Made by a program: the position numbers and the translations under genes. Below are positions 11,001 to 44,853 of a stretch of DNA of 49,508 bases, piece after piece. Origin of the DNA: Octopus bimaculoides (Eukaryota); NCBI RefSeq assembly GCF_001194135.2, contig NC_068981.1, positions 191,830,818-191,880,325 on the forward strand. Direction: 5' to 3'. Position 1 is the first letter of the stretch. Each line of letters begins with the position of its first letter. The notes under the pieces are model-generated. The model was given only the letters and a program-made list of their open reading frames with translations, was not told where the DNA came from and did no database searches.

Positions 11001-14000
11001 GATCCGTCTAGCTATTGAAGTGTTTGGCGGAAAGAGAAACCTGACTTCACAATGCTAATGTGTTTGTGACAGGATATATTACTTAATGCTAATGCCTTTC
11101 AAACAAAGGCTATTGGAATAATAGAGCTTTTTTTTTTCTTGTTCCTAATGGAAGATGATATATAATATTTGTTGAATATATAGTAGTAGATTAAATCTTA
11201 GAATATGAGTAAGTCTGCTTATGAGACTCAAATGAGAACTGATCGCTAGCTTTCTTGACAGCAATTAGGGCTATTACAAATGTAAAGTATTTTGAGGAAT
11301 TCTGCAGAGAATAGATTATATTTAAGGACAAAATGTAATCAGATATTAAAAAAGAAAATCTTTGTTGGAAATGTTAAATAATAAAAGGTTTAAAATTTCA
11401 GAAGCAAAGAGAATAGCTGATAAATTAAATTAAATATGAAATATTCAAATATACTTTAATCTTGTTTTGGAAGAGTTTCTGAGCTCTAGCTGAAGGCTAC
11501 AATGCACTTCATTTGGCACCATCACTATGGTATTGATACTGAGGCCAATACATTTAAACATATCAAATGCAATTTGTTTATATGCATACAGACAATAGTA
11601 GATTGCAAACAGAATTTTGTAATTAGAAATTTACATGTTTTTTCACCAGACATTGTGATGTATATGTAAATTGTAGCAGAGCAGGTAGCCATATTAAGGC
11701 ATGAAGCACTGTATTTGCAAATAGTTATTTAATGTAGTACATGGAAAACATGAAATGAAATGAAGCCACTGATGGTGCCTTTATTATAAACTTTTGATCT
11801 GCCAGAAATAGCAACAAAATCCCTTTCATATTACTACTTTCTTTAAAAAAAATGACATGATGTAGATACACTTTCTGAATAAGAAATAGGATAATGTGGC
11901 CTTACCTACATAAGGCTGAGAAAGCAAAAAAGACAAAACGGTTATGAATGGAATGATGATGAAGCAGAGCAGGAGATAATTAATGAGCTGCAACAGTTAA
12001 AATGTTGTAAAGATCAACATCCTTTCACCAGATTTAACATATCCCTGCAATATGGGGATAAATAACTGGTAAAAGAAATATTTTTTGAATGAGTAGTTGC
12101 AGCTAACTGAATTTACAATTAACTGCATTTGTGAAAACACAAAAAGTCTGCTGTCTTGTGTTATGACAAACTAGACTATACTAATAAAGAAANNNNNNNN
12201 NNATTGTATTTCTTATTTCTAAATGTTTGGCAATTACTGAGCTGAATGTTTTGCTTCAATAACAGCAGACCAGGATTATCCATCAAAGACATTGTGCTAA
12301 TTTTACTTGTTAAAACATTTTAGCTCACAAAAACCTTCTGTATTAAATAGAGGAAAAGTTGTGATAGTGTTTATACACAATGAAATGCCAACTTTTCCTT
12401 GCTCACATGGAATTTGTTGAGGCAGATTTTCTATGGCCAGATGCCCTTCATGTTGTTAACCCTGTTTTCTAAGTAAATTAATATTTACCCATGGCCGGAT
12501 ATGTTTTCACAGAGGATTGAAAACAAAAGGTACTGCGAGTATGGCAAGGTGTCAGGTACCTCATTCCTTTGTCATTTCATCTGAAAGGTTCAGCTTTTTG
12601 AGGTCATTCTTCAGTACTTCATTCCAAATATAACAGGCTTCTTTGAGTTTCCATCTAACAAATCCATTTACAAGGCTTTGTTGGCTCAGGGCTACAACAG
12701 ACATTTACCCAAGTTGCCATGCAATGGAACTGAACCCAAAACCATGTGGCTTCTCAACCACACAGCCAAGCCTGCACTTTCATAATTAATTAATGAAATT
12801 CAAGTTACTAATTAATATTTTGTGCTTTCCATATTTCAAATTATTACAAAATTTCATTTTTTTTTTTAAATTAAACTTATTTCTTTTCTAATGCAGGAGG
12901 ATAACTACAATTTTTAATTGTAAATTGCATATAATACTAATATATTTATAAAGTGTTACTTGTGGCATTAACATTAGCTGTATGTAATAGCTAATATGAT
13001 CTGTATATTTTCCACACATTAAAATTTAAGCCTTCTTTTTGTTAATAATATATAGCTGTTTATTAGCAGATTTTTGTTTATCAATTTGTATTCATGTATT
13101 ACTAATTTTATATTTTTTCTATTTTTCTTTTAACCTTAAAGTAAAAAAGTGGACCCCTGTCAAAAGACACCATTCTGCAGGTGACATGTTGGTCACTGAA
13201 ATAGAGCCAGGTAATGACCTGGATAAAGTAGAACGTCCAAAATCAGAAGGACATGCTTACACCAGGCAATTTTCACCAAAGAGAACATCTAGTTATGGGG
13301 TATGTTTATTTTATTGAAATGTATGAAATATATCAAGTATCTCCTGATGAAAAGCTTCGTTATAGGTTGAAGCATCCATGGGGACTAATCATTATGCCAC
13401 TTTTATTTTTGTTTGTTGGAAGAGGTTTAACCTTTTTGCTATCACATATTTCTGCTGAAATACTCAACTTTTGTTTCAATTAATTTTGCAACAGACGAAG
13501 AATTTAGTAAAATAACTTCACCATTCTTAAGCTTGTGTTTCAAGCATAAATTAACTGAATTTTTTATGGAAAATTTTAATTAAAATCACCTTAAAACAGG
13601 AAGTTTGTATCACTGAACTGAGGGCAGTTTCAAGCAGGTTGGTATCAAAAGGGTTAAAAATGTCATCTGAGTGGAGCTGAAGAAATAAATATTAGTCATA
13701 TATGTTCAGTATTCAAACTGATTACAGAGAGAAAGAGAATTCAGGACTGTTGCATGTTACATCTGGCTTCTTTGGTGTTGTAATATAAACAGTTTTGTTA
13801 GCATGAAATATATTAAAAAAAACAAAACAAAAAACAGATCTTGAGTTCTTTAGAATTCCACTTCTTCAAAAATAGTGTTTGCTAGTAGCCATGTCATGGT
13901 ACTTGTCTGTCTTCAAATATTTGAGCAAATTTTTTTTCTATACTTTGCTTTATCAAAAACTTTAATATATTTCTTTCATGCTTTCCTTTCTGATCTTGAT

Positions 14001-24199: not shown

Positions 24200-24579
24200 C
24201 AAACGTGGCCAATGACAGTACCCACTGACTGGCTTCCATGCCAGTGGCACATAAAATGCACCTTCGGAATGTGGCCGATGCCAGTACCCCCTGACTGGGC
24301 CCTGTGCCGGTGGCACATAAAAAGCACCCACTACTCTCTCAGAGTGGTTGGTGTTAGGAAGGGCATCCAGCTGTAGAAACTCTGCCAGATCAGATTGGAG
24401 CCTGGTGCAGCCTTCTGGCTTGCCAGACCTCAGTCAAGCCGTCCAACCCATGCCAGCATGGAAAACGGATGTTAAACGATGATGAGGATGATATATAGCA
24501 AATAAGTAACAAGGAAGTGTATATTTGTCTCCTCATGACATCACATGATAGTTGATGGAAACTCTGTGTACACACTCAT

Positions 24580-24615
<36 letters not shown>

Positions 24616-27600
24616 CCTCTCTCTTCCTCTCTCTCCCTCTCTCTCCATGCAACCATAGGAAAAGACATAAAATGATTGCAAGAATACATCAGTGAAGGCT
24701 TTAGTTCAATCCCTCTATATTCCTATCATCTCTGACTTTTCTCCTTTGAGTCAAAGAACTGGGTTCAATGTATTCAACAGAAAGATGATGTCCCAGCATG
24801 GTTGTAGTCCAATGATTGAAACCATAAAAGGATTTTTATCTTTTTAACCTATATCTAATTCTTTTTTATTTTATTTTAATGAACTATAAACTATAAGTAT
24901 ACAAATAAGTTTTGTTATCCATTTAGCAATGACCTTTAAAGGAAGAAACATAAAGAAATTTCACAAGAAGCTTCTCAAGCTTCTAGTAAATATGTAAGGT
25001 TTCACTAAATATCTGAGAGTTGGCGGGGATAGCAATTATGCTGATCCAGTCAGATTTTATTTAAAAACAAAATCAATGCATTTCTATTAGTTTCCTTCAT
25101 CAGACACAGTATCTCAGTTCCACTACCATCCTCTGTAATTCTAGTCAATAGAGAATTCATAGTGTTTATCTTCCATTAGATCTGATCACATAATTTTGAC
25201 CTCATTATTTCAGATTTTAGTTACAATTCTAAAGTTTCACCTATTAACTTATTTTCTAAGATTGCATTAAACTGGTTTTCTGTTTCCATTGGAAATTGTG
25301 GTGCTTAATGCTGAGTAGTCTGGTGATCAATTTAAGACATCTCCTATTTCACAGGATATTTGGTGCAAGATATACTAGTCAGTCATAGAAATACTTCTTC
25401 TAAAACCTTAGTTTTCCAAACTGTTGATAGTTTGTTGACTTCCTTAACATTAATGTGAATAACAGTGAAAATATCAGTAGAAGGTTTCTTTTCAAAATTT
25501 TGGATTTTTTAAATGTCTTGATCTGAGACTGTGTTGAAACTGAAGCAACTACATCAGAAAAGAGCCATTTAATAGCACACAACTGTGACCAAGTCACTGA
25601 CACAGTTCAATATAGAACTATGAAATAAAGTTAGATTTCAAATTAATTTAACAGTTTTGTGTGTTATTAAATGGTTCTTCCATGACGTATTTGCTTTTAA
25701 AAATAAGATATTGTTATATCCTCATCACCATCACTATCATGTTTGCTTTCCATGCTGGTATGAGTTTAATGGGTTGCTGTAGTCCAAGTCTGTTCATTAT
25801 TTAGGATTACTACCCTCATAACAGGTTGTCTCATTTGTGCTTTTTTAAAATTCTTATCATGGTTTCTATGGTAGGATGCCCTTCTTTACACCAACCAATT
25901 TACAGAATATATTTGGATACATTATCATTATTAGTGTCAGCATTAGTGAGGTTGCCTTGTATCCTGCAAAACAAACAAGGTCACCACTACATTACATTGT
26001 TTTTCTTTGTTCAGGATAATGTCGCCAGTAAAATGAGGTATGAATTTAACAAGTTTCAGTTATACTCCTGTAATTATATTTTGGTCAGAAATCTATTCCA
26101 AACAAAGGTTTCCCATGAAATTTCTTTCTGAAGAAAATATCAGATTAAACATGATATCGTTGAATATATTTTGTTATCTACAGTCTTGTGAAACAGAAAT
26201 TCCTAAACATATGGACTCTTTAGTTTTCTAAGATAATGGTTAAACTTCTACACATTCAAATCACCATTATTAAAGTTATTTAAAAGACAAGACAAGACAC
26301 TTTCTTCTTATCAGACACAATTTTATGTATCAAATCAAATGTAATGTGGTATAGGTACAGGCATAGTTGTGTAGGTGAGAAGTTTGCTTTCCAACCACAT
26401 GGTTTCAGGTTCAGTCCTACTGTGTGGCTCCTTGGACCAACCAAAGCCATGTGAGTAGATCTGGTAGATGGAAACTGAAAGAAGCACATTATGTGTGTGT
26501 GTTTGTGTGTACCCTTGTCTTGACTTTTTGCGATAGTCGTAAATAAGTGTCACTGTCATACAAACACTGTTGGTCATTTTTGATATTCTGTGAAAACGTG
26601 GAGCCATGGGTAAAAGTTACCTTGCTTGGAAACAGATAAGGATTAGTAATAGGATGGGCATCCAGCCATAAGATAATCTATCTCATAAACTCTGTCCTTC
26701 CCTGCAAGAAGGAAAAATGGATATTAACTTGATAATGAATGTATGCCACCAAGTCTCTAAAGATGCTCAACAATTCAGAAATAATGTAAAATACAGGAAA
26801 CAAATATTTTTTTTATAGCAGTTTAAATGTATTTATTTCCTTATATATCATTTATTGTGTTTCTTCTTTTGATCTAAGAGTACTATTTGTTTTATAGTTA
26901 ATAGTTAAAATCCTCCAGTAATCATGCTGGAATGACTAAATTTGATTCTCCAAGGTGATCTTTAGACAAAATTAACAGGTGTCCAATAGAAATCCATATG
27001 TTGCAATGCTAACCTCTACAAATTGAGCTATTAGTTAATCCTAATTGAATACACCAGCATATAGATATCTGATCAATGACTCCTTTAATGACATATCATC
27101 ATGTCTGTTTCATTCTATCCCTGCATGGATTGGCAACATCTTCACCAGCCTAGTATCTCATTACTTGTCATAGATCAGCTTTCACCATCTTTTACCATAT
27201 CTTTCTTGGTTTTCCTCTTCCCATTTGGATTGTTTGGCACTTCTTTACCCATCTGTCATCCCCACATATATGACCTGTTCTATATCTATGCAATCTTCTC
27301 TCCTGTATACACCTGGCTCCTTTTATACCTTGTTTTTCTCTCAGCTCACCTGGCCGTGTTATTCATACACATTAACATCATATATCTGCTGGAACAGACT
27401 TGCTTAATTTCTTTCCTACCTTCACACATTCAATGCCCATATTTAGCTCCTGTGCAACACTGCACAACACACACCACACCATACCATACTATATAATGTG
27501 CTCTGCATTTTGGAAAACAGTTCCTTTATTGTCAATAGAAGTGATAGTTTCCAAAACATTTTTCATCCATCTTACTCTGGTTGCTATGCTTTCAGAACAC

Positions 27601-28727: not shown

Positions 28728-31700
28728 GTTAGTGTGCTTTTTACATGGCACGTAAAAAGCACCATTTGAGTGTGGCCAATGCTAGTGCTGCCTGAGGGGC
28801 TCCCATTCCAGTGATACGTAAAAAGCACCCGCTAAACTCTCAGAATGGTTGGAGATCTTTTCACTTTCATCGGCAGATCAAGAAATTAAGTTTTTGTAAC
28901 TAAACACTTTCAAACTTTGGACGCTGGTAGAATGTGTCATATAAAACATCTTTTATTCTTAGCGTTGTTGAGAAAAATTTCTATTTACGAAGTTATTTCG
29001 TGTTAAAGTTGTTGTATTTTGGTAATTTCATCCAATCAATGACGTGTATTCAGGTGAATAAAATTACTGCTGTTGTTTGTCAACAACTATCGGCAGTGTA
29101 TATTTCGTTTGACACTGTTATTTATGACATTGTTTGTGCGTTTGTACTGGTTTTAGCTTTAGGGTTTTAGGGTTAGGGGAAAAAGTGAAAAATGAAGAAA
29201 TTGGAGGGGGGAGGAATAAAGGGGCCAAAAAATTTCAAAATTCCGATTTTTGGCAAATTTCCATCTCCGTATCCAAAAAAGCTGGGTTTTTGGCAAAAAA
29301 AAAAATTGCGAGAAAATAGGGGTGGGGATGAGAGGAAGTATTTTCCGAAAAACAGGAAAAAAAACCTAAGATGCAGTAGAAATGCACGAACGATTATGGT
29401 GGTGTCATGAAGTAAACGTGCTTCAGATACACTCGTTTATTCATACGAACATAACTGAGATGAAATATGTCCTGACTAAAAGAACTTCTGAGTTGCCTTG
29501 CATTATGGATAAATTGAATTGTATCAGTAACTTTGAAGACTTACATTTAGTGTTTGACTAATCAATTGTAAACCAAAAGCTTCTTCATTAATAATTCCCA
29601 CTTGTTTTAATTTTAGAGACTTAAAGCCTCAGAATCTCTTGATTAGTGATGAAGGGGAACTTAAGCTTGCAGATTTTGGTAAGTATTCGAGTTGAAAATA
29701 ATTTTGATATTCTATCTATTTAGTTGTATGATTTTGAGGTAAATGTTATACTGATGTCAGTTATTGCTAAATGTTACATAATTATGCTGCAGCTTCCTTC
29801 CTCCATCTTTCCCAGTCTTCGACTGACCTCATATTTCCATTATTTTCTTCTTTGTCCATTCCTTGTTGTTATTCAACTGTCAACCACAACTAACAACACG
29901 ATTAGATGAGATTTGTTTCATATACTATATAGGAAAGCAGTGCAAAACATACACTGGTATTGCAAATAGCCACCCAACTGAATAAAAGTCCATTATCTGT
30001 GTGTGTGTGTGTGTTCTACCCTACTGCTTGGTAACTGGTGTTGGATTGTTTATGTCGTTGTATCTTAGCAGTTCATCAAACGAGACCAATAGAATTAGTA
30101 CGCGGCTTGAAAAAAAAAAAAGTACTAGGGTTGATTTGTTTGACTAAAAAATCTTCAAGATGGTGCCCCAGCATGGTCACAGTTCAATGACTGAGACAAG
30201 TGAAAGATATATGTGACAGAAGCAGTATCAAATTAAAATAGCCATCTTAAATACCCTTCTTAAATACATTGTTGAAAAGCAGATTTGCTGTGGTAGTCTT
30301 CCAGAGATAACATCTATTATGGATGGACTGTGTTTAAAAATAATATATTATCATGGGGAGACAATACATATGAGACATTTTGACAAATGAGAGAACTGAA
30401 CTATAATTTCTTTATTTGTATTAAATTTCAGCCCATCTTGTTTAAACGTTACAATATGGCTTGGGTGCTAATTAAGAGACTTGACCAAAATAATTTTTAT
30501 TTCCAAACAAATCTCTTTTCCTACCTCAAACAATGTACACTCTTGTACTTAGTGTTTCTTTCATCATTGTACTTTGGTATGTTTGGTGAGAGTCTTTGGG
30601 TGAGGAAATCATTTTGAAACTTAAATATGTTTGTTTTTTGTTTTGTTTTTTGCATTTGCTGAAAGTGAGGAAGGGGTAGACCCCATGAGACAGGTGAGCT
30701 TGATGTTTCATTTAGATTATTGCAAGTCACTGTTTAAAGGAAAGACATGAGCAGGGAAAAGATTCCAGTGGGTCAGTGTTCTGGGGAGGAAGGACTGGGA
30801 TTGTGGTTAGTGCAGGGTGAGGGTTAGAGGTGAATGGAACAAGGGTGACTAGAAGTGAGAAGATGAGTGAATTATGGTACCCAAGTGATGGAGGTACAAG
30901 AGGAACCGGCTCCAAGGAATTGTATCTTGTATTTGCTGAGAATATAAAAATGATATCAATCATTGACTAATACTATTTTCTCCCTCTCTGTAATTTTTTT
31001 TTTTTTTTTATGGACCCTGCTTTAAATATGTTAACACTAACTGTTGCTTTTCAAGTTAATGGCATTTCTGAATTTGTAAATTTCTTATTAGAATTTGACC
31101 CAAGTTATTTTCAATTTGACCCTGGTTCTAGTCAAGAGGTTGGCTCACATTAAGTTATTACATAACAAATACCAATAAACTGAAAAACAGAATTTATGAT
31201 TGGTAGATTGAACAGAGACAATGCTGGAAGTTGAGAGGATCATTTAGTGTTGCTAAGGTCCTGACAATGTCTCTAGTGTTGACACCATGATAAAACTCAC
31301 CCCATACACTATGTAAAGTTGTTGGTGTTAGGATGGGCGTTTAACCATAAAGACTATATCTAAGTATGTGAGTGAGACGTGGTCTTCTAACCTGTCTAGG
31401 TGAGCAGTAATTCTGAATAAGAACCACCTCCAACCTAGGTCCACATAGAAAATGGGCATAAAAGAAATGATCTTATTACCTACACCTTTGTTAAGGCTGA
31501 GGTATTGTTTTCAGTCGTGTTTGTTTGTTTGTTTGTTGGGATCGATCCAGTTCCGGACAAGGATTCTGGGTTATTTGTTATGTTTACTTTACATGATTAC
31601 GATCTTGTGTTGACTTTCAAGTCTTTCTCAATTATCTCCCTTTAGGCTGTTTCCAAAGTTTTATTTTGGTTTCTCTATTATTAATTTTACTCGCGTCTCT

Positions 31701-34700
31701 ATCTTAGTAGAAACTGATGGATAAAGAAATCAAACTTAATTAAATAATGCTAACATATTTTTATAATATATATATTACATATTATACATACATAATCTAT
31801 ACATCGATCTAAAACAACAGGAGTACTAAAGGAAGGCCGGAATTTAAGAGAAGAGAAAACCAAAAGGTCTCATGCTATTCATTTAAAAATTCCTGAGTAC
31901 AACTTACTACTATTACCTCCGCCTTTGATACTATTTTGAATGGTGAATTTGTTAACTTTGGCTTGTATTAGATAAGGATAAACTATTATTGTTACCAAAT
32001 TTTCTACAGTTACCTTCACATTCCATGACTACCGTTGGGATTGATCAGATACCAGACAAGGATTCTGGATTATTTTTCCGATTTTTTAACTTAGTTTTTG
32101 AGAGCAGTTGGGTTTATTTTTAGTATTGTTGTTTGTGAGAGCAGTCTAGTTTATTTCAAATATTCTCATTTAAAAAATTATTTCTGGCTAATCGTTGAGA
32201 TGCTCTTGTTCCTATTATATTTAGTTTCAGATCTTTATCAACTTAACACATTATTTTCATCACATTCTTTCAGTTTATGCCTGTGACTTTTTAAAAAACT
32301 CCCTTGGAGTATAGAACAGTACAAAGAAAGAAAATATATTGGTTCTTTTGTTTTGTCTTACTCTTAGGTTTAGCCCGGGCCAAGTCTGTTCCTAGTCGAA
32401 CATATTCCCATGAGGTTGTCACTCTTTGGTATCGGCCGCCGGATGTACTGCTTGGATCAACAGAATATTCCACATCCTTGGACATGTGGTAAGTATAAGG
32501 TTAAAGCCATCAATAACCATAGCATATATTAGAAAATATCACTTTATTTTACCATCATTTCTTTGGTTAACTGCAATGTTGTTATTGCACATATCACATT
32601 TAATCTATATCTTAACTCAATTTAAGCAACCATATGTGGATTAGCTAATAATAATGATATTAGATGCTTTCCATTACATTTATTAATTTATGTTGCTCAT
32701 CAATAATGAGAGTGATTGGAACATGAAATGGTAAACACTATGGAGCTTGAATGTCAGAAACATGTAACTTGTTTAACTTTTTGTTACTTGCTTTTTTTTT
32801 TTCCATTTTATCAAAATAAACGAATTTGGAACCACAGCATTCTCTGCTTCAAGATCACTGAGATTGAATACTTCTGTCTTTTCAGGGGAGTCGGTTGTAT
32901 ATTTACAGAGATGATATCTGGTGTTGCCACATTTCCAGGGATGAAAGATACATACGACCAATTGGATAAGATCTTTAGAGTAAGACATTGCATTGCATCG
33001 GTTTTCTTTGTTCATATAGGAAGCAGCAGTAAACATCAGGCCCATTTAAGTACTTTGTAGCATTCAGTTTATATATTGAGTTCAAAATATGTGTGAAACC
33101 CTGTTTTTCTTACCCCTGCCAGCATGGACAACAGATGTTAAATGATGATGCCGATAACTTGTGGATTACATAAAGTAAAATACCAATCAAGTATTGAACA
33201 GTACTTCTTTTCTGAAAGTTAGCTGACATATGTCAAATTCAGAAACAACTCTTTGCTTCAAATATCAAACAGTGGTGTGGTGTGGTAGGCCCTTAAATCA
33301 TGTTGGAGTTGTAGGGTACCATCAAAACAAATCTGGTGGCACTCCTGCTTTCCAGGTTTGAACAAAGCTGATCTCTTCCAGACTGAGAGAGAAGACTTAA
33401 CACTAAGTTGATATGGGTGACATTTGATTTCAGAGTGGCAGAGAGCTGAAACAAATACTGCAGGAAATTCTGTCCTTATATCCTAACGACTAAACCAGAT
33501 CACTGATTGACTACATGAATTCTAGTTTAAGTTCATTGTTCTAAAATTTCAACTATTTGGTCGAAATAAATTCGTAAAACTTTATTTGAAATTCTGACCT
33601 CCCAAATCCTCTAAGTGTGAGGGCATGTAGTCTAGTGGTTAGTGTGTTGCACTCAGGATCACAAGATTGCGGTTTCAATTCCCAGACTGAGTGGTGCATT
33701 GTGTTCTTGAGCAAAACACTTCATTTCATGTTGTTGCTGTTCACTCAACTGTAAATGAGTAACCCTGCAATAATCTGTAATCGTATTCATGGGAAATGTG
33801 ATCCCAGCCACTCATACACCAATGGAAACAGAGTAACTGGCCTCAGTTATACCAAAACTTTTTTTCCAATCTCCACCCGAACTGGTAAGATACTATAATA
33901 GGGGAACTAATCCATGGTAGACAACTCTACTGTAATTAATAAAACTAAGAAACCAATTTGACTCATTTTCTCTTCATTTCAATCTCACTTTAAAAAGCAT
34001 AACTCCTAAACACACCACAGAGCAAATGTTTTGATTCTGTACAAGAATAGGTTTTTATCATAAATTAACTATAGCCAAAACTCAGTCCTGGTAGAGTAAA
34101 CTTATGATCAACGGCATACCAACCATGCATGAGTGGCTGTGTGGTAAGTAGCTTGCTTACCAGTCACATAGTTCCCGGTTCAGTCCCACTGCGTGGCACC
34201 TTGGGCAAGTGTCTTCTACTATAGCTTCAGATCAACCAAAGCCTTGTGAGTGGATTTGGTAGACGGAAACTGAAAGAAGCCCGTTGTACATATATATGTG
34301 TTTGTCCCCCACCATCGCTTGACAACCGATGGTGGCGTCTGTACGTCCCTGTAACTTAGCGGTTCAGCAAAAGAGTCAGATAAAATAAGTATTAGGCTTA
34401 CAAAAAATAAGTTCTCGGGTCGATTTGTTCAAGTAAAGGTGGTGCTCCAGCATGGCCGCAGTCAAATGACTGAAACATAAAAGAATACCTATTTGTAGGT
34501 CAGGGTCAACAGTGTATCCCTCTAATCATATTAATGGGGATACTTAAAACGTTGATAGGTTGCTGTCTTTCACAGGTTGAATGACCATGAAGTTATGCAT
34601 TGCATCAGCATGAAGAGATAAATAACAGACAATGGTCACTTTTACTGTTTGTGGAAGTTTCATTGGGAAATTATTATTAATAATAATAATGGTTTCAAAT

Positions 34701-37700
34701 TTTGGCACAAGGCTAGCAATTTCAGGAGGGTGAAGAAGTTGATTAGATCAAACTCCAGTACTCAAGTGGTACTTATTCTATTGACCCCAAAAGGATGACC
34801 TTGGCAGAATTTGAACTCGGAATGTAAAGACAGATGAAATGTCGCCAGGCATTTTTGCCTGGTGTGCTGACACTTTTGCCAGCTTACTGCCTTAATACAC
34901 TATCACTATTAATAATAATAGTGACAATTCGCATTAATGGATTAGTGTTGTCTGTCAGAGCAAGAACAACAATTATTTGGTGTTTGAGGTTTACAACAAC
35001 TGAGTCACAGTCTGCTACTCTGGGTACAGCTTGTTCTTTAGTGTTTTTGTTTGTTTCATTGCTTTGTATTATCAGCATGAATTTTGTGTGTCTTTATAAA
35101 CTATAACACATTTATCTAATTCTAATTTCACATCTTATGTGTTTTTAGGGAATATAGGAAATTTCATTTCTTTTAATTTCAGCTCTTAGGTACCCCAAAT
35201 GAGGAATCCTGGGAATCAGTAACGAGTTTACCTAATTATGATATAAGTATGTTGATTATTAATTACCAAAATTTTGGATGTTACTTTTGATTTTGTTGAT
35301 GACTACTTTTTAACCCTTTAGTGTTCATATTACTCTCTCAAATGTAATGCTTATTTATTCACATTATGAACTTATCTTGAGACTTCAATATTTTGATGAT
35401 GTGAGAATTTATTTTTAGAATGACGTTGTAGGGTTGGTGTGAGAGGCTTGATCAGGCCAGTTTGAACATAAAACAAGTAGAATATATTGGCTGGATATGA
35501 CCGGTTTAAATGCTAAAGCATTAATAACTTGTTAATATTTTTCATCTCATAAATTAGAAAAATGAAGAATGCAATATTTTCCATATTGTTTATAGTTCAT
35601 TCTGATGATAGTTTTGCTCTGTCTCTATTACTGTTAAACAATAGTTGATGTGTGCCATCTTACTACCCAATTAGGACTTGAAAGCATTTATATATTTAAT
35701 TCCCTAAACATTTTCCATCTGACAATAGCTATTTGCCTTTATCCTTCTCTTCCCAATACAATATTCAACATGGTTCTAAATCTGTGTAAGGATCTTTTAG
35801 CCCTCCTATGTTCACCTGTATCATATAAAACAGACATCCAATCTATACTATTCTCATTTCTTCTCTTGTATTTTTTCACCTTCGTATATGTTATGCCTGT
35901 TGTTACTTTATAAATCATATATTCATTTTGTTTGATATAGTTTCCTTCTTAAATTTTTGACTTCATTTTCTTTTTGTCTTCAACAGCTAAATTCAATATG
36001 TACAGCCCCCAGCCACTTATTCCTTGTATCTCCAAACTTGGTTGTATACCAAATGCAGCTGAATTGTCAACAAGCCTTCTACAAGTAAAATCATTATTTT
36101 TTTATTTTATATTTTAATGTTTGAAACATATTTCAAAATCTAATGATGTTATCCCAAATAAAATAGCAGAGCAAACTTTATAATCCTTTGAGATTATGCA
36201 GTCTGCTTTGCTGTCACATGGTTATAAATTTGATCCCCATTGCACAGCACCTTGGTCTTCTACTATACCTGCTGGTTGACCAATGCCAGTCATGAGGTCA
36301 AACATCCCTGAAAGTTTCATCCGAATCCATCCAGCGGTTCTTGAGATATCTTGTCCACGGATAAACAAACAAACACAACTGAAAACAATACCTCAGCCTT
36401 AACAAAGGTGTAGGTAATAAGATCATTTCTTTTATGCCCATTTTCTATGTGGACCTAGGTTGGAGGTGGTTCTTATTTAGAATTGCTGCTCACCTAGACA
36501 GGTTAGAAGACCATGTCTCACTCACATACTTAGTGGAATGTATCAATGAAATCCCTGCAGCAACCTGTCTGTCTAAATGTGGAGAGTTGTGCCCCTTTAT
36601 ATATATATATGTGTGTGTATATATATTTATATATATATATATATACATATATAAAACATAACCTAGTAATTTGATGAATAGGTGTCGAAGTATCAAACTG
36701 AAATTAAGTACCGGGTTGACATGATTGACTGAAACTCTTGAAGGTGGTGCCCCAGTATGGCCACCACCCAAAAGTAACTGAAGCTATTAAAAACATAGGA
36801 TAAGTTTTAGAAGCAGTAGTTTATTTTGTTGTATTAACAATAACTTAGACTATATTGAAATATTTTCACCAGTTTATTTCTTTTCCAGATGGAACCTTCC
36901 AAACGAATAAGCGCCTCCAACGCAATGAAACACGAATATTTTTGGGATCTCCCACCAAAGATTCATCAATTACCAGATGGTAAAGTATTATCTCTTTTGT
37001 TGAAATCATTGGAAGGATGATAATATTATGCTAAGGCTGCAAGCTGGCAGAACCATTAGCATGCTGGGTAAAATGTTTAGTGGCATTTCTGCCATGGTTA
37101 ACTTTGCCGTTCATCCTCTTGGAGTCGATAAAATAAGGAGTACTGGGGTCGATGGGATCAATTTAACCCCTTCCCAAAATCGCTAGTTTTATGCCAAAAT
37201 TTGAAATTAATATTATTATTATTAATATTGAGTTCCAATTCCGCTAAGGTTGACTTTCATTCTTTTTGTGTCAATGAGATAAGTACCAGTTGTATGCTGG
37301 GATCAATGTAATTGATTTACCCCCATTCCAGAACCCCTGCTGGCCATGGGCCAAAATTTGAAACTAATATTATTATTGTCAGTTGAGCTGGCAGAATTAG
37401 CCAATGTGTCAAACAAAATGCTTAGCGGCATTTCTTTCAGTTCTTAACAATTTTAATGTACAAATAATACTGCCAAGGTAAACTTTGTGTTTCCTCCTTT
37501 CCAGCTCAATAAAGATAAAGTACCAGTCTAGTACTGGGGTCATTGAAATCAACTTCCCCCACCTCAAAATTGTTGGTTTTGCACTAAAATTTGAAGCAAT
37601 TATTATTACTAAGGCAACAAATTGGCAGAACTGTTAAGGCATTGGACAAACTATTTATTGGCATTTCTTCTGGCTCATTATGTTTGCCTTTCATCTCTAT

Positions 37701-39220
37701 GGGACTGATAAAAGAGAGTACTAGTTGAAAACTGGGGTCAATGTAATTGACTTACTCCCTCCCCCTAAAATTGCTGGCTTTGTGCCAAAATTTGAAACTA
37801 TTATTCTTATAATTAATATTATAGGCGCAGGAATGGCTGTGTGGTAAGTAGCTTGCTTACCAACCACATGGTTCCGGGTTCATTCCCACTGCGTGGCATC
37901 TTGGGCAAACCAAATCCTTGTGAGTGAATTTGGTAGACGGAAACTGAAAGAAGCCCGTCGTATATATATATGTATGTGTACGTTTGTGTGTCTGTTTGTC
38001 CCCCCAACATCACTTGACAACCGATGCTGGTGTGTTTACATCCCCATAACGCTAGCGGTTCAGCAAAAGAGACTGATAGAATAAGTACTAGGCTAAGAAA
38101 GAATATGTCCTGGGATCAATTTGCTCGACTAAAGGCGGTGCTCCAGCATGGCCGCAGTGAAATGACTGAAACAAGTAAAAGAGAAAAGGCGCCGGCAAGC
38201 TGGCAGAAATGTTAGCATGGTGGACGAAATGCTTAGCGGGATTTCATCTGTCCAATGTGAGTTCAAATTCCGCCGAGGTCAACTTTGCCTTTCATCCTTT
38301 TGGGGTCAATAAATTAAGTACCAGTTACGCACTGGGGTCGATGTAATCGACTTAATCCCTTGTTTGTCCCCTCTATGTTTAGTCCCTTGTGGGCAGTAAA
38401 GAAATAAGAAGACCAAGGAAAACATAGGTAGAAGTGATGAAGGCTGATTGCAGGAAGTGACAAAGGAATGCAACAAATGGCAGGATTTTGTGTTGGAGCA
38501 TCCAACACATGAAAGTATGGAAAAATTAATGTTAAAAATGAACAAACAGGTGTAGGAGTGGCTGTGTGGTAAGTAGCTTGCTTACGAACCACATGGATCC
38601 AGGTTCAGTCCCACTGCGGGGCAAGTGTCTTGTACCATAGCCTTGGGACGACCAAAGCTTTGTGAGTGGATTTGGTAGACGGAAACTGAAAGAAGCCCAT
38701 CGTATATATATGTGTGTGTGTATGTTTGTGTTTGTCCCCCCAACATCGCTTGACAACCGATGTTGGTGTGTTTAGGTTCCCGCAACTTAGCAGTTTGGCA
38801 AAAGAGGCCCATAGAATAAGTCCTGGGGTCGATTTGCTCGACTAAAGGCGGTGCTCCAGCATGGCCACAGTCAAATGACTGAAACAAGTAAAAGAGCAAA
38901 CACTGAAAAGCATTTTATGTGTTTGACTTCAAAGCTTTCCAAAGTTAATTTTGCCTCTCATCCTTCATAAGTCAATTAAAATAAAGTAATAAGGTATATA
39001 TGATTGATTGATTCCTCCCTCAAAATTGCTTTGTGTCTATGTTTGAAACCATTATTAGTTAAAAGTTGCAGTAGTATTTCACACTTGTTTTATTTCCACA
39101 GTGGCTTCCATATTTGACATTCCTGGTTTGAAACTTCTGCCCGAAATGAATGAACCAGTCAATGCTGCTCAAAAAAAGCCCACTTGTCGCAGTGGCATAC
39201 GAACCACATTAAAGGCATGA
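7882..39220 (+). CDS. CDK14: Cyclin-dependent kinase 14 (PFTAIRE kinase), 14 coding exons, 5' incomplete: join(7882-8056,13142-13299,17853-17944,22363-22442,22829-22923,23815-23877,28600-28661,29617-29678,32368-32488,32886-32979,35183-35246,35987-36084,36889-36979,39102-39220)
   Basis: Manual splicing gives 1374 nt in one open frame with GT-AG introns and matching phases. Kinase motifs: [86 protein letters not shown] plus AKSVP and FPGMKD are diagnostic of CDK14/15 rather than CDK16-18. Confidence 0.96.
8092..8345 (+). mobile_element. SINE family A, truncated, 35 nt downstream of a donor site
   Basis: GGTGCAGGCATGGCTGTGTG head, TTGGGCAAGTGTCTTCTACTA core; followed directly by a family C element. 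Confidence 0.75.
8354..8715 (+). mobile_element. SINE-like family C: three 64-67 bp tandem units plus RTE-like (GAT)n tail
   Basis: GGTGGCACGT at 8405, 8469 and 8536; tail CCATGCTAGCATGGAAAGCGGACGTTAAACGATGATGATGAT. Confidence 0.85.
8765..9195 (+). mobile_element. SINE family A, tail type 2
   Basis: Head, GGCACCTTGGGCAA core and tail homologous to other copies. Confidence 0.75.
10100..10590 (+). mobile_element. SINE family A, diverged
   Basis: GGTGTAGGCATGGCTGTG head, core, (TG)n, CATGCTAGCATGGAAAAACAGATGTTAAATG tail. Confidence 0.65.
12193..12202. other. 10-N assembly gap
   Basis: Direct reading. Confidence 0.99.
12390..12780 (-). mobile_element. SINE family A, reverse, diverged
   Basis: Reverse complement of head (CCACACAGCC at about 12760), core and tail 2. 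Confidence 0.6.
13142..13299 (+). CDS. CDK14: CDK14 exon (V)[15 protein letters not shown]...KRTSSYG
   Basis: Polypyrimidine tract plus AAG acceptor and GGG|GTATGT donor; VKRHHS resembles VKRVHS of vertebrate CDK14 (from memory); phases 1 to 0 fit both neighbours. Confidence 0.85.
13427..13657 (-). mobile_element. piggyBac-like MITE family 2
   Basis: TTAACCTTTT...GGTATCAAAAGGGTTAA; homologous to 18775, 23117 and 39579. Confidence 0.72.
14683..15295 (-). mobile_element. RTE-clade LINE 3' fragment with (GAT)n tail
   Basis: Decayed translation WRKF...[15 protein letters not shown]...[10 protein letters not shown]...RRGRLRKT, typical of the RTE ORF C-terminus; ends CCATGCCAGCATGGAAAAAAGACTTTAAATGATGAGGATGATGA. 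Confidence 0.85.
15770..16130 (+). mobile_element. CR1/Jockey-group LINE RT fragment
   Basis: [24 protein letters not shown] (FADD at 15983-15994) and [10 protein letters not shown]; homologous to the 4210-4600 fragment. Confidence 0.7.
17120..17340 (-). mobile_element. SINE family C-like 3' portion
   Basis: (CAT)n tail followed by reverse complement of the CCAACCCAT and GGAAGGGCA motifs. Confidence 0.6.
17373..17412. repeat. (AG)n microsatellite
   Basis: Direct reading. Confidence 0.95.
17853..17944 (+). CDS. CDK14: CDK14 exon [30 protein letters not shown] (Gly-rich loop)
   Basis: CTCTAG acceptor, GTAAGT donor, kinase subdomain I. Confidence 0.97.
18775..18994 (-). mobile_element. piggyBac-like MITE family 2
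   Basis: TTAACCCTTT start, degenerate right end; internal match to 13427-13657. Confidence 0.62.
19185..19870. mobile_element. Cluster of three family A SINE heads (+ at 19185-19350; - at about 19410-19520 and 19730-19870)
   Basis: Homology to the family A head/core in both orientations. Confidence 0.65.
20452..20870 (+). mobile_element. SINE family A, tail type 1
   Basis: Full head, (TG)n and ...CCCAGCATGGCTGCAATCCAATGACTGAAGCAA tail. Confidence 0.78.
21787..22013 (+). mobile_element. piggyBac-like MITE family 1
   Basis: TTAA at both ends; imperfect TIR (T/C)CCTTTAGCATT; no ORF; second copy at 35310-35524. Confidence 0.75.
22363..22442 (+). CDS. CDK14: CDK14 exon [26 protein letters not shown]
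   Basis: TTTCAG / GTAAGT; catalytic Lys and PFTAIRE helix. Confidence 0.98.
22829..22923 (+). CDS. CDK14: CDK14 exon (A)[31 protein letters not shown]
   Basis: CTCCAG / GTGAGT; subdomains III-V. Confidence 0.98.
23117..23329 (+). mobile_element. piggyBac-like MITE family 2
   Basis: TTAACAGTTTGATACCAAC...AAAAGGGTTAA. Confidence 0.7.
23815..23877 (+). CDS. CDK14: CDK14 exon [21 protein letters not shown]
   Basis: TTTCAG / GTAAAA; phase 0-0. Confidence 0.96.
24200..24492 (+). mobile_element. SINE-like family C: two tandem units plus (GAT)n tail
   Basis: Homologous to 8354-8715. Confidence 0.85.
24581..24646. repeat. Imperfect (CT)n microsatellite
   Basis: Direct reading. Confidence 0.9.
26352..26735 (+). 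mobile_element. SINE family A, tail type 2
   Basis: Head, core and tail homology. Confidence 0.72.
27090..27920 (-). mobile_element. Diverged RTE-clade LINE fragment (post-RT region with Cys cluster)
   Basis: [16 protein letters not shown] followed by [23 protein letters not shown] (FxYLG motif), a degenerate RRL..GH motif and a GATGAT tail. Confidence 0.7.
27965..28345 (+). repeat. Two tandem copies of a dispersed repeat (ATTATCCAATGTGTCC...GATTTGAGGG...CTATTTCTAGCA); related copies near 4090-4215 and 14185-14345
   Basis: Recurring motifs at several positions in the window. Confidence 0.5.
28600..28661 (+). CDS. CDK14: CDK14 exon [20 protein letters not shown](R)
   Basis: TTTCAG / GTATGG; subdomain VIa. 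Confidence 0.97.
28689..28725. repeat. (AC)n microsatellite 27 nt downstream of a donor site
   Basis: Direct reading. Confidence 0.95.
28862..29463. repeat. CpG-rich unclassified insertion with TTAGGG-like units
   Basis: Abrupt CpG enrichment; TTTAGGGTTTTAGGGTTAGGGG at about 29158-29179; abuts a truncated family C element (28735-28855). Confidence 0.45.
29617..29678 (+). CDS. CDK14: CDK14 exon [20 protein letters not shown](G)
   Basis: TTTTAG / GTAAGT; catalytic loop and DFG. Confidence 0.98.
31474..31570 (+). repeat. Non-autonomous repeat beginning TTATTACCT.C.CC...GGTATTGTTTTCAGTCG(TGTT)n; related pieces at about 31910, 32035 and 36290-36420
   Basis: Shared TATTACCT start and GGGAT(C/T)GATC...GACAAGGATTCTGG motif recurring in the window. 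Confidence 0.55.
32368..32488 (+). CDS. CDK14: CDK14 exon [39 protein letters not shown](W)
   Basis: TCTTAG / GTAAGT; activation segment. Confidence 0.98.
32886..32979 (+). CDS. CDK14: CDK14 exon [31 protein letters not shown]
   Basis: TTTCAG / GTAAGA; subdomain IX. Confidence 0.98.
33616..33830 (+). mobile_element. Distinct tRNA-derived SINE
   Basis: A-box-like TAGTCTAGTGG, B-box-like GGTTTCAATTCC, then TTGAGCAAAACACT...CACTCAACTGTAAATGAGTA core. Confidence 0.55.
34127..34484 (+). mobile_element. Young SINE family A, tail type 1
   Basis: TGGCTGTGTGG (A-box-like), GGTTCAGTCCC (B-box-like), GGCACCTTGGGCAAGT (CORE-like); close to the copies at 37823, 38548 and 43652. Confidence 0.9.
34680..34893 (-). 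mobile_element. SINE family B with (ATT)n tail
   Basis: Reverse complement of GCTGGCAAAAGTGTCAGCAC...GAGTTCAAATTCTGCC...GTACCACTTGAGTACTGG...ATTATT. Confidence 0.78.
35183..35246 (+). CDS. CDK14: CDK14 exon [21 protein letters not shown]
   Basis: TTTCAG / GTATGT; LGTP motif. Confidence 0.96.
35310..35524 (-). mobile_element. piggyBac-like MITE family 1, reverse copy
   Basis: TTAACCCTTTAG...TGCTAAAGCATTAA; internally homologous to 21787-22013. Confidence 0.75.
35987..36084 (+). CDS. CDK14: CDK14 exon (T)[32 protein letters not shown]
   Basis: CAACAG / GTAAAA; phases 1 to 0 fit; aligns to the CDK C-lobe insert. Confidence 0.92.
36205..36800 (+). mobile_element. Diverged family A SINE interrupted by an insertion of about 245 bp (36288-36533)
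   Basis: Head/core to CCAATGCC, resumes AGTGGAA..., microsatellite, tail type 1. Confidence 0.65.
36889..36979 (+). CDS. CDK14: CDK14 exon [30 protein letters not shown]
   Basis: TTCCAG / GTAAAG; subdomain XI (P..RISA...H.YF). Confidence 0.97.
37033..37822 (+). mobile_element. Head-to-tail array of four family B SINEs
   Basis: Repeated CTGGCAGAA...AAGTACCAG...CTGGGGTC...CCAAAATTTGAAA(TTA)n units starting at about 37033, 37230, 37381 and 37611. Confidence 0.82.
37823..38183 (+). mobile_element. Young SINE family A, tail type 1
   Basis: Near-complete copy ending ACAAGTAAAAGAG. Confidence 0.9.
38184..38410 (+). mobile_element. Young SINE family B
   Basis: GCTGGCAGAAATGTTAGCA...GAGTTCAAATTCCGCCGAGGTCAACTTTGCCTTTCATCC...AAGTACCAG. 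Confidence 0.85.
38548..38896 (+). mobile_element. Young SINE family A, tail type 1
   Basis: Near-complete copy with small internal deletions. Confidence 0.9.
39102..39220 (+). CDS. CDK14: CDK14 last coding exon (V)[38 protein letters not shown]
   Basis: CCACAG acceptor; SIF.IP...L.PE matches the CDK14 C-terminal motif; TGA at 39218-39220. Confidence 0.95.
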
Positions 39221-43025: not shown

Positions 43026-43651
43026 TTATCAGCTAATACCCTCTACACAAAATTTCAGGCCTTATGATTATTTTACAATATCCTTTGTTTTTTTTGTTTT
43101 TTTTTTCATGTTAAGTTTTCAAAGTAACTAGAGGTTATCATTCACTGGTTTCAGTCATTGAATAGCAGCCCTACTAAGGCCGACCCCAATACTTATTTTT
43201 TAAGTCAGATACTTACTCTATCAGCATCTTTCGCTGAACCCCTATATTATGGGGATATAAGCAAACCAAAACTAGTGGCGATAGGGACAGACAAAATCTT
43301 CACATTCAACAGATTTGCACCAAATCCACTCAGTGGAACTGAATCGAAAACCAGAGGGTTGTTAAGCAAGTTTCTTTACCACACACCCATGCCTAATGCT
43401 AGTTTCCTTTGTTGCATGTCTTTGCATGAAAGAAAACTAACATTTTCTTCAAGTTTGGTCATAGAAAAGGAAATATTTAGGTCACGCATGATAGATTATT
43501 CAAGTTTAATTAGATAACCTACCCACATATCCAGCACAGATTAATCGGTCACTATGGTTATGTAGGTGGTTACATTGCTATTAAACTGAAAGCATATACT
43601 TGGTAGGTGTTGTTCCTTTACCAATACTTAAGTAGTTGGATGTCTTACATA

Positions 43652-44014
43652 TACTCTTTTACTTGTTTCAGTCATTTGACTGCGGCCAGGCTGGAGCACT
43701 GCCTTTAGTCGAGCAAATCGACCCCAGGACTTATTCTTTGTAAGCCTAGTATTTATTCTATCGGTCTCTTTTACCAAACTGCTAAGTTACGGGATGTAAA
43801 CACACCAGCATCGGTTGTCAAGCGATGTTGGTGTATATATATATATATACACACACACAACGGGCTTCTTTCAGTTTCCGTCTACCAAATCCACTCACAA
43901 GGCTTTGGTTGGCCCGAGGCTATAGTAGAAGACACTTACCCAAGGTGCCACGCAGTGGAACTGAACCTGGAACCATGTGGTTGGTAAGCAAGCTACTTAC
44001 CACACAGCCACTCC
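43652..44014 (-). mobile_element. Young SINE family A, tail type 1, reverse
   Basis: Complete reverse-complement copy. Confidence 0.9.
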
Positions 44015-44853
44015 ATTAATTTTCTACAATGAAAAAATATCCGAAACCGTTAAGTAAAATGGGCAAATATCTTAATCTTCTCAATATTCTGTATGTATTA
44101 AAAGTAACAGCATGAAATTTTCTGGGAGGAGGAATGTTTCAAATTGTTGTCATTCTTATCCTATCATGGCTATCTCTTATAACAAAGAATCAGTCCCAGA
44201 AACCCTATAAATATCTTTTATAATAGCTACTGAAGAGACCAGACAGAATACAGCACGAGATATACGAGCTTTGTCTCTTGTTTTTGAGATCAAACCCACC
44301 CAACATTGAATTTGTTGTGTATTTTTATCAACAATAAAAATAACAGCAATTTAGAGAAAGAAATTTAATTCACTGCATTCTATCCGACAAAACTTGGCCC
44401 TGGGCTGCCTCTTTGGATCCCCTGATGTGAATTTTATTTTTTTTAAATGATTTTGGTATGCTAAGGGTAATGGGGGGGGAGGGGGCATCTCAACCTGGAG
44501 ACTTGGCTTGCAACTGAGCAGACTCTACTAAAGGCAATTGACAACAGTCAGAAGGTATTAAACCAGGTATTAGATAAAATCTACTACATTTAGTTTGCGA
44601 CTACCAACCTTCACATACAAAACTTTGCTGTGGAGCTATGCCAAAAGAGACTGCGCAGTGGGGTTGAACTCATGTAACTACAAAATGAATCTTCTTAGCA
44701 CACGGGTCCTGCTAGAATCACATTCACTAACAGTGATGTGCTTCATGCTATTGTATTACACTTTCTTTACTGAAAATTTTGGCCTTGCAGCAGCCAGTTA
44801 TATCATCTTTTAATGTCCATTTGCCATGCTGGCATGGGTTTTATATAGATATA

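Follow-up and report, generated by a model that had tools for sequence, protein, structure and literature searches.

The 49,508-nucleotide stretch of Octopus bimaculoides DNA analysed in this study (hereafter the window) carries on its plus strand an orthologue of CDK14, with best matches in Lottia (78%) and Pomacea (80%) and with relatives named CDK14 in many animals, as a first-pass annotation of this DNA had proposed. No octopus CDK14 orthologue was found in the protein database searched, where Lottia gave the top match. Table 1 lists the features of the locus, in which four internal exons (C to F), 377 nt in total and with AG/GT at every boundary, are bracketed by two copies of a 171-nt sequence in opposite orientation, arm 1 in the B-C intron and arm 2 in the F-G intron. 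Exon C starts just past the DFG motif, so exons C to F cover the activation segment and the C-lobe. Arm 1 ends 837 nt before the exon C acceptor and arm 2 begins 278 nt after the exon F donor, spacings that had earlier been given as about 840 and 280 nt; the coordinates of the earlier exon map (121 + 94 + 64 + 98 = 377 nt, assigned to the activation segment and C-lobe) were also right. Exon G has the donor GTAAAG at 36980, and the normal reading frame continues from it into the last coding exon, from 39102.

Table 1. Features of the CDK14 locus and of its repeats (positions are those of the window)
Feature	Position	Strand	Basis
Arm 1, inferred source copy	31360..31530	+	repeat search and direct arm comparison
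Arm 2, inferred derived copy, inverted	36363..36533	-	repeat search and direct arm comparison
CDK14 exon B, ends ...KLADFG, upstream partner of predicted skip junction	29617..29678	+	
CDK14 exon C, 121 nt, encodes activation segment	32368..32488	+	
CDK14 exon D, 94 nt	32886..32979	+	
CDK14 exon E, 64 nt	35183..35246	+	
CDK14 exon F, 98 nt, its donor the would-be back-splice donor	35987..36084	+	
CDK14 exon G, 91 nt, downstream partner of predicted skip junction	36889..36979	+	
Old decayed family-A copy, 5' boundary of arm 1 in its interior	31264..31474	+	nhmmer and shuffle test
Canonical family-A copy	24314-24497		
Canonical family-A copy	8540-8723		
Closer family-A variant	25720-25926	-	
Old decayed tRNA-like octopus SINE copy (~430 bp), split by arm 2	36197..36793	+	nhmmer

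Arm 1 is the reverse complement of arm 2 over 171 nt with four mismatches (97.7% identity) and no indels, a match far above chance expectation. Two comparisons, including an alignment of the arms, confirmed the earlier description of an inverted match with four mismatches that are all transitions. In arm orientation, the differences (arm 1/arm 2) are G/A at 31379/36514, T/C at 31408/36485, G/A at 31415/36478 and C/T at 31516/36377, two of them being CpG in arm 1 and CpA/TpG in arm 2; three of the four differences, including both CpG losses, lie in arm 2. The direction of substitution was considered as a possible trace of A-to-I editing in an RNA-mediated copy and was set aside: the pattern is mixed and two changes are CpG decay, so direction is uninformative about RNA-mediated copying. 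A self-BLAST of the whole window returned 39 inverted and 60 direct repeat pairs, of which 98 of the 99 had 65-89.7% identity and the arm pair was the only one above 90%. No third copy of the 171-nt unit was found in the window (BLAST, word size 7).

The two arms differ in their surroundings. Approximately the first 112 nt of arm 1 are the 3' part of an old, decayed copy of a dispersed repeat (family A), collinear with the flank upstream of the arm, and the nhmmer match to this family at 31293-31382 (E 1.3e-6) spans the arm boundary at 31360. Family-A homology is strong in the upstream flank (z = 8.5), and an alignment prolonged from there into the arm outscored shuffled arms for four of five family copies (3-8 of 1000 shuffles reached the score); taken alone, the arm interior resembles family A weakly (z about 2.2-2.4), and its homology leans on collinearity with the flank. 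The last ~56-58 nt of arm 1 lie beyond the (GAT)n tail of family A and end in a (GTTT)n run, which extends to 31537 at arm 1 only and whose length differs between the arms. Since the canonical family-A copies terminate in (GAT)n and the last ~56-58 nt of the arm have no family similarity, the duplicated unit does not have the shape of the element: its 5' end is internal to a family-A copy, its 3' end lies 58 nt past the (GAT)n tail, and both boundaries differ from the ends of the family.

Arm 2 begins abruptly within an unrelated SINE. Using a SINE model built for nhmmer from four copies in the window, model positions 43-139 were matched at 36197-36287 and positions 306-388 at 36700-36793, in collinear order on one strand; the two matches lie 246 nt further apart than in the model, and arm 2 accounts for 171 of these. 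No family-A similarity was found in the flanks of arm 2 on either side. Beyond the arms, the flanks of the two copies showed no homology with or without gaps (65 of 500 shuffles reached the score), and an apparent TCCGGACAAGGAT / TCCGTGGACAAGAT likeness in the 3' flanks was not significant. Target-site duplications were sought at both arms against a chance level drawn from 2000 random flank pairs, and both arms were at or below that level: arm 2 has no target-site duplication, with no shared flank word of at least 5 nt (below chance expectation), and arm 1 has none, with one shared 5-mer ~30 nt from either junction and not abutting it. Junction microhomology was 0 nt just outside either end, one junction being blurred by the length change of (GTTT)n. 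Sub-threshold matches to mir-297 and mir-1277 at 36588-36662 correspond to a (TA)n/(TG)n microsatellite.

Searches outside the window support an octopus origin of this DNA. The SINE of the window matched Octopus proteins only among 5.8 billion proteins searched, and both background repeat families are present in an O. vulgaris chromosome, as seen at one 20-kb locus that was chosen through an annotated protein derived from the SINE. No copy of the arm unit was found in these 20 kb, a sample too small to bound its copy number. The translated arm also had no match among the 5.8 billion proteins, a weak result given that non-coding eukaryotic DNA is rarely gene-called. An exact 25-mer of the arm was absent from metagenome, prokaryote-genome and viral collections, as was a control 25-mer taken from the abundant family A, which makes these negatives uninformative.

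On internal sequence evidence, the two arms are best read as the product of one local inverted copy-and-insert event and not of two insertions of an active element. A ~171-178-bp segment of the B-C intron, consisting of the 3' part of one decayed family-A copy with ~58 nt of private flank ending in (GTTT)n, would have been copied and inserted in inverted orientation ~4.8 kb downstream, in the F-G intron. The insertion site would have been inside the unrelated old SINE, with blunt junctions and no target-site duplication, and each arm would since have drifted to the four transitions (2.3% divergence) observed. As in a local templated insertion, the source is in its undisturbed native context and the second copy interrupts unrelated sequence. 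Transposition appears to explain these junctions less well than either a template switch during replication or the repair of a break with a captured, templated piece of DNA (or cDNA). The earlier proposal of a recent local duplication of decayed, copy-specific sequence is thus supported by the native setting of arm 1, the placement of arm 2 in a SINE and the lack of target-site duplications at either arm. Overall, we consider it probable that the locus holds a young local inverted segmental duplication in CDK14 that is likely edited by ADAR, may cause minor back-splicing or skipping, and is neutral or slightly deleterious.

There are several other potential explanations for the inverted pair. 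The arms could have been inserted independently, as two members of a young retroposon subfamily spread across the genome, a family-A derivative that gained a new 3' module with a (GTTT)n tail, with arm 1 full-length, arm 2 5'-truncated and their proximity coincidental. SINEs are extremely abundant in this genome, the interior of the arm is akin to a dispersed family that has a closer variant in the window, and the unit ends in a simple-repeat run of unequal length in the two copies, a (GTTT)n microsatellite such as some retroposon tails carry. However, neither arm has a target-site duplication, neither the 49.5-kb window nor the 20 kb of O. vulgaris holds a third copy, and the 58-nt 3' module is missing from all other family-A copies seen, which end in (GAT)n. 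In addition, all other repeat pairs in the window are less than 90% identical and show no sign of a current burst of activity, and for two copies ~2% apart to land within 5 kb of each other by chance would be unlikely if the subfamily were not very abundant; this origin is therefore considered rather unlikely. Transposable elements of other kinds were also considered. The arms contain no tRNA-like gene (ARAGORN) and no Rfam match, which speaks against a pair of transposable elements; inspection of the unit ends revealed no Helitron-like or other diagnostic termini; and a DNA transposon with 171-bp terminal inverted repeats was rejected because what lies between the arms is host sequence, namely four CDK14 exons that keep the order and reading frame of the exons outside.

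Two further explanations were considered. Inverted artefacts do arise in long-read assemblies, and arm 2 could derive from, for example, a chimeric or foldback read, but four transitions, two of them CpG decay, and no indels are the signature of evolutionary divergence and not of read error. Furthermore, the window has two 10-N gaps (2765-2774 and 12193-12202), both distant from the arms, and no gap within 19 kb; arm 2 is cleanly set between collinear halves of a SINE; and the flanking exons are all intact and in order, which together make an artefact very improbable. Gene conversion between two old inverted copies of one repeat might instead have homogenised a 171-nt tract, since conversion is known between inverted repeats separated by a few kb and the high identity is limited to a sharply bounded tract. 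Conversion requires pre-existing homology, however, and the flanks of arm 2 are without family-A similarity on either side. The tract holds 58 nt of non-family sequence, arm 2 sits in a different element, and the non-homologous flanks beyond the arms argue against conversion between old copies, so that this explanation is extremely improbable.

A sense transcript of CDK14 carries both arms in its introns, so that the pre-mRNA can fold a 171-bp duplex that loops out exons C to F. The predicted arm-arm duplex has a free energy of -313 kcal/mol and pairs 170 of 171 positions on the sense strand (167 Watson-Crick pairs and three G-U pairs, with one C-A mismatch), and no competing partner for either arm was found in the window. 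A single arm folds at about -37 to -40 kcal/mol, which is an ordinary sense-strand structure (z = -0.3); this ordinary fold, together with the Rfam and ARAGORN results above, led to the rejection of a structured RNA gene in the arm. The arms contain 48 and 56 adenosines, or 38 and 47 when those with a 5' G are left out. The duplex is thus near-perfect intramolecular dsRNA over more than ~100 bp, as in known hyper-editing substrates, and the arms have the structural attributes of circRNA-promoting repeats, being complementary, located in both flanking introns, stable and not out-competed within the intron.

According to these predictions, the most likely consequence is ADAR hyper-editing of the arms with, at most, low-level back-splicing or skipping. 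ADAR would make promiscuous A-to-I hyper-edits in both arms, and the editing would then weaken the duplex. A minor fraction of transcripts might back-splice to a 377-nt circle of four exons, or skip exons C to F and encode a truncated, inactive kinase. The first-pass annotation had expected the skipped mRNA to be frameshifted; the predicted frameshift stands and can be refined, as the resulting stop would lie in the last coding exon, 14 nt from its start. With the stop in this position, the skipped mRNA would probably evade exon-junction-dependent decay and be translated into the truncated protein. The modelled geometry, a near-perfect duplex of 171 bp without a competing partner, fits the known mechanism of back-splicing. 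However, octopus circRNAs occur at overall low levels, with 296 high-confidence circles across 18 tissues, and these low levels have been attributed to the melting of intronic duplexes by ADAR, with most octopus editing found in introns and 3'UTRs (PMC9699675). Editing is thus more to be expected here than an abundant circRNA.

It is possible that the inverted pair is instead a selected regulatory device for an abundant, possibly neural, 377-nt CDK14 circRNA or for a regulated skip of the activation-segment exons, with the ratio tuned by ADAR editing of the stem. The geometry is near-ideal in this respect (a long, near-perfect stem close to the splice sites on both sides, with no competitor), three of the four substitutions still pair as G-U on the sense strand, and CDK14 circRNAs are well documented in mammals. 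Nevertheless, three G-U pairs among four transitions would arise by chance with a probability of about 5/16 and are not significant, the pair is young and looks accidental in origin, the circle of exons C to F has stop codons in every frame, and the mammalian circles need not use homologous exons. In addition, octopus circRNAs are few and weakly expressed, ADAR antagonises such stems, and the accessible supplementary files of the same study contain no CDK14 term, which is a weak negative (PMC9699675). A selected device is quite improbable in light of these points, and the duplication is most likely a structural variant that is neutral or slightly deleterious under selection, and not an evolved regulatory device.

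The local duplication favoured here shares features with several known systems. Intronic complementary matches, such as inverted pairs of human Alu elements, reportedly promote back-splicing (Jeck 2013, Zhang 2014, Liang and Wilusz 2014 and Ivanov 2015 are said to have described this, the last being also cited in PMC9699675). Like those pairs, the octopus arms are complementary and located in the introns flanking an internal block of exons, far exceed the 30-40 nt said to suffice, lie less than 1 kb from the splice sites and are free of competing pairing within the intron; unlike them, the arms are a one-off local copy and not members of a dispersed family, the circle is a prediction, and few circRNAs are reported from the host lineage. 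Templated sequence insertions (reportedly described by Onozawa 2014) and the local inverted duplications produced in double-strand break repair or by replication template switching (MMBIR) resemble the octopus locus in that a short fragment appears to have been copied from nearby without a target-site duplication, with the source left intact and the copy interrupting unrelated sequence. In contrast, the octopus unit has 0 nt of visible junctional microhomology and, at 171 nt, is longer than typical polymerase-theta filler, and its mechanism is deduced from the end product alone. Low divergence between inverted repeats has been linked to ADAR editing, and like the hyper-editing substrates formed by nearby young inverted repeats, the octopus arms would form a long, near-perfect intronic intramolecular duplex of low divergence, here in a gene of a heavily editing lineage (PMC9989829). 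Many hyper-edited hairpins are short-looped, in contrast to the 4.8-kb, exon-containing loop of the octopus locus, where editing is predicted. Mammalian circCDK14 has been detected experimentally (e.g. PMC7415803, PMC8741855), and the circle proposed in octopus shares with it the host gene family and the use of internal coding exons; however, it would have arisen independently through a lineage-specific duplication.

The inverted duplication is real but fairly ordinary in kind, adding to the intronic inverted repeats of a genome rich in repeats. Inversion of the 4.8-kb segment between the copies, which the arms could also mediate, would disrupt the kinase. Cephalopod editing activity varies with tissue and temperature, and it is conceivable that a single accidental copying step created in one octopus lineage an ADAR-tunable CDK14 switch, in which an intact stem would favour circularisation or skipping of the activation-segment exons and yield less kinase and an edited stem would restore linear splicing; such a switch is distinctly improbable, but if real it would couple editing activity to the dose of a neuronal cyclin-dependent kinase. 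If the RNA predictions hold, the locus would amount to a clean natural experiment, in which one datable duplication of non-transposon origin forms a perfect intronic stem around four exons, free of competing repeats, in an animal whose ADAR is very active. It could then show how much circularisation, skipping and hyper-editing a single new stem yields in vivo, and test the proposal that editing holds back-splicing down in cephalopods; should arm 2 prove polymorphic, animals carrying it could be compared with animals lacking it as matched controls.

Whole-window self-comparison yielded 99 repeat pairs (39 inverted, 60 direct), whose identities range from 65% to 89.7% with the sole exception of one inverted pair at 97.7%. 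The two arms of this pair, recovered by a repeat search, are 171 nt long, 98% complementary and separated by 4832 nt, and base-by-base comparison found four mismatches between them, all transitions, and no indels, exactly as the first-pass annotation had described. At two of the four mismatched positions, arm 1 (the upstream arm) carries a CpG where arm 2 carries CpA/TpG. A BLAST search with a word size of 7 found no third copy of the 171-nt unit in the 49.5-kb window. The arm pair is real and stands apart from the other repeats around it. The nearest assembly gap is 19 kb from the arms; two runs of exactly 10 N (2765-2774 and 12193-12202), presumably scaffold gaps, both lie distant from them.

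The surrounding gene is a protein kinase on the plus strand, with 12 exons located within the window by tblastn using the best homologue as query. Its spliced translation matches CDK14 orthologues (78% for Lottia; 80% over 70% of the query for Pomacea) and many proteins named CDK14; no cephalopod CDK14 was present in the protein database searched with this translation. The final kinase coding exon (39102-39217) closes with a stop inside the window, which therefore holds the entire kinase domain and the C-terminus, without the N-terminal exons. Both arms are intronic and lie on the sense strand of this one gene, arm 1 ending 837 nt before the acceptor of exon C and arm 2 starting 278 nt after the donor of exon F. 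The enclosed exons C-F sum to 377 nt and, because exon C starts directly after the DFG motif, span the activation segment and a large part of the C-lobe.

Features of the inverted pair, its repeat relatives and the enclosed CDK14 exons, with predicted junction sequences
Feature	Position	Strand	Description
Arm 1	31360-31530	+	intron between exons B and C
Arm 2	36363-36533	-	intron between exons F and G
CDK14 exon C	32368-32488	+	121 nt, AG/GT boundaries
CDK14 exon D	32886-32979	+	94 nt, AG/GT boundaries
CDK14 exon E	35183-35246	+	64 nt, AG/GT boundaries
CDK14 exon F	35987-36084	+	98 nt, AG/GT boundaries
Family A, good copies	24314-24497, 8540-8723		
Family A, variant closer to arm 1	25720-25926	-	
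Predicted uninterrupted (arm 2-empty) sequence at the SINE site			AGCGGTTCTTGAGATATCTTGTCCACGGAT / TGGAATGTATCAATGAAATCCCTGCAGCAA
Predicted back-splice junction			exon F donor / exon C acceptor: TGAATTGTCAACAAGCCTTCTACAA / GTTTAGCCCGGGCCAAGTCTGTTCC
Predicted skip junction			exon B / exon G: GGGGAACTTAAGCTTGCAGATTTTG / ATGGAACCTTCCAAACGAATAAGCG

The sequence directly upstream of arm 1 (approximately 31264-31359) is part of an old, dispersed repeat, family A, and a family-A profile match (31293-31382, E = 1.3e-6) crosses the arm boundary at 31360. Pairwise alignment with the minus-strand variant copy is collinear from 31264 to 31472 and contains a 36-nt segment specific to the variant, with an identity of about 78% as counted from the alignment. 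Taken alone, the upstream flank is strongly similar to the variant copy (z = 8.5) and the arm interior is marginally similar to family A (z of about 2.2-2.4). In alignments constrained to extend the flank collinearly, the real arm outscored shuffled arms against four of five family-A copies, the observed score being reached by 8, 3, 3, 6 and 122 per 1000 shuffles for the five copies. Canonical family-A copies terminate in a (GAT)n tail at the position equivalent to about 31470 in arm 1, and the arm's final 56-58 nt show no family-A similarity. Because family-A homology crosses 31360 and stops at about 31470, the 171-nt unit is an internal piece of one decayed repeat copy together with part of its private flank, ending in (GTTT)n, which bears out the earlier description of the arms as copy-specific sequence. 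The unit lacks the shape of a mobile element, and arm 1 is in its native context.

Several smaller features were noted in and around arm 1. Right after the (GTTT)n run begins a directly repeated segment of about 95 nt (31535-31630), which recurs 499 nt further on within this intron (32034-32130); its 42-nt core is 83% identical, its score was reached by 0 of 500 shuffles, and it has no counterpart adjoining arm 2. On the minus strand of arm 1, 31390-31440 forms an internal imperfect hairpin (CCTAGGT...ACCTAGG), owing to which the antisense strand folds better than shuffles (z = -2.4; 3 of 200 shuffles). This segment is the variant-specific insert shared with the variant family-A copy, and the hairpin may represent a small palindrome inserted long ago into that repeat subfamily. 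The 5' region of family A also carries, internally, a tandem duplication (about 66 nt, units 82% identical) at 24202-24328 and 8369-8554, which is a feature of the family rather than of any one locus, as it is present in both good copies.

Arm 2 lies in a different setting. Its 5' flank has no family-A similarity, and the profile of a tRNA-like SINE of about 430 bp matches on either side of it (model 43-139 at 36197-36287 and model 306-388 at 36700-36793). The two matches are collinear on one strand, and the stretch between them exceeds that of the model by 246 nt, of which arm 2 accounts for 171; arm 2 is therefore an insertion into an unrelated old SINE. No target-site duplication was found at either arm, the flanks beyond the two arms share no homology, and reading of the junctions revealed no shared bases just outside either end, one of these ends falling in the (GTTT)n run, the length of which differs between the copies. 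Beside arm 2, sub-threshold Rfam matches to mir-297 and mir-1277 at 36588-36662 (31 and 27 bits versus gathering scores of 90 and 81) were rejected as low-complexity artefacts on a (TA)n/(TG)n microsatellite.

This SINE is the most abundant one in the window, and among 5.8 billion proteins an antisense reading frame of it matches only those of Octopus (66% identity over 95% of the query for an O. vulgaris protein; O. bimaculoides was also matched). Both main repeat families of the window are present at 77-90% identity in a 20-kb chromosomal locus of O. vulgaris, and these matches place the window in Octopus or a close relative. In that locus the 66%-identical protein, a 128-aa "Hypothetical predicted protein [Octopus vulgaris]" (OX597836.1, locus positions 10001-10387), overlaps a SINE copy and looks like a repeat-derived false gene call. 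SINE pieces are densely clustered at 37024-38930, in the intron after exon G: four partial units spaced 157-237 nt apart (37104-37820) and, beyond them, two almost complete copies (37806-38217, 38531-38927). Several of these pieces have inverted partners at 34672-34885 and 43624-44035.

The native context of arm 1, the embedding of arm 2 in a SINE, the lack of target-site duplications and the non-homologous flanks all agree with the first-pass proposal of a recent local duplication, and on this internal evidence such a duplication is the probable origin of the pair. A fragment of approximately 171-178 bp from the intron between exons B and C would have been copied and inserted, inverted, into the intron between exons F and G in a single event, after which the arms would have diverged by about 2.3%. 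The variant family-A copy polarises two of the four arm differences, one derived in each arm, and both CpG losses lie on the arm 2 side. Judging from the end product alone, the candidate mechanisms are break repair that captured a templated fragment, template switching during replication, or reverse transcription of an intron fragment.

An unlikely alternative is that the arms belong to a retroposon subfamily, young and composite, whose tail is (GTTT)n, the second copy being 5'-truncated; this would require a new 3' module that none of the other copies shows, the absence of target-site duplications, the chance proximity of two copies within 5 kb, and activity where no other pair in the window exceeds 90% identity. 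Both a 25-mer from the arm and a control 25-mer from family A were absent from metagenome, prokaryote-genome and viral collections, and since the control was equally absent, these three collections contain no host DNA. Gene conversion between old repeat copies is less probable still, given flanks without homology, as is an assembly artefact, against which stand differences that are all transitions, CpG decay among them, without any indel, the clean embedding of arm 2 and the remoteness of the closest gap. The missing target-site duplications and boundaries that are not element-shaped speak against a transposon pair, and an interior of host exons against a transposon with long terminal repeats.

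The arm duplex computed as RNA pairs 170 of 171 positions (167 Watson-Crick and 3 G-U pairs, with one C-A mismatch) at -313 kcal/mol, compared with about -38 to -40 kcal/mol for a single arm folded alone. The sense-strand arm by itself is not unusually structured (z = -0.3), and no Rfam or tRNA match was found in the arm. Other inverted pairs in the gene (e.g., 34131-34487 with 43652-44013, 86%) use other sequences, leaving the arms without a competing partner. Long perfect duplexes undergo promiscuous ADAR editing, and stems bracketing exons promote back-splicing and skipping. The primary editing targets in metazoans, octopus included, are dsRNAs of evolutionarily young repeats and nearby inverted repeats (PMC9989829), and octopus editing is mostly intronic or in 3'UTRs (PMC9699675). 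Octopus circRNAs occur at low overall levels (18 tissues gave 296 high-confidence circles, most in a single tissue), which has been attributed to ADAR melting intronic stems (PMC9699675). For this reason, the arms, which contain 48 and 56 adenosines, are likely to be hyper-edited, with a 377-nt circle or a skipped mRNA as a possible minor product. The circle would have stop codons in every frame. Skipping of exons C-F shifts the frame to a new stop 14 nt into the last coding exon (from 39102), and the predicted product probably escapes junction-dependent decay and encodes a kinase truncated after DFG. The circle, skipping and editing proposed in the first-pass annotation are plausible, tempered by the published octopus data.

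The arm pair is a fresh instance of a well-known kind of feature. It resembles in function the inverted Alu pairs flanking human circRNA exons as well as the inverted-repeat hairpins accounting for most ADAR targets, and in origin the templated insertions and local inverted duplications of break repair. CDK14 circles are already known in mammals, from which any octopus circle would be independent in origin. What distinguishes the pair is that it forms a clean, one-off, non-transposon stem without competitors, in an animal that edits its RNA heavily; should RNA data reveal an effect, it would serve well as a natural test case.
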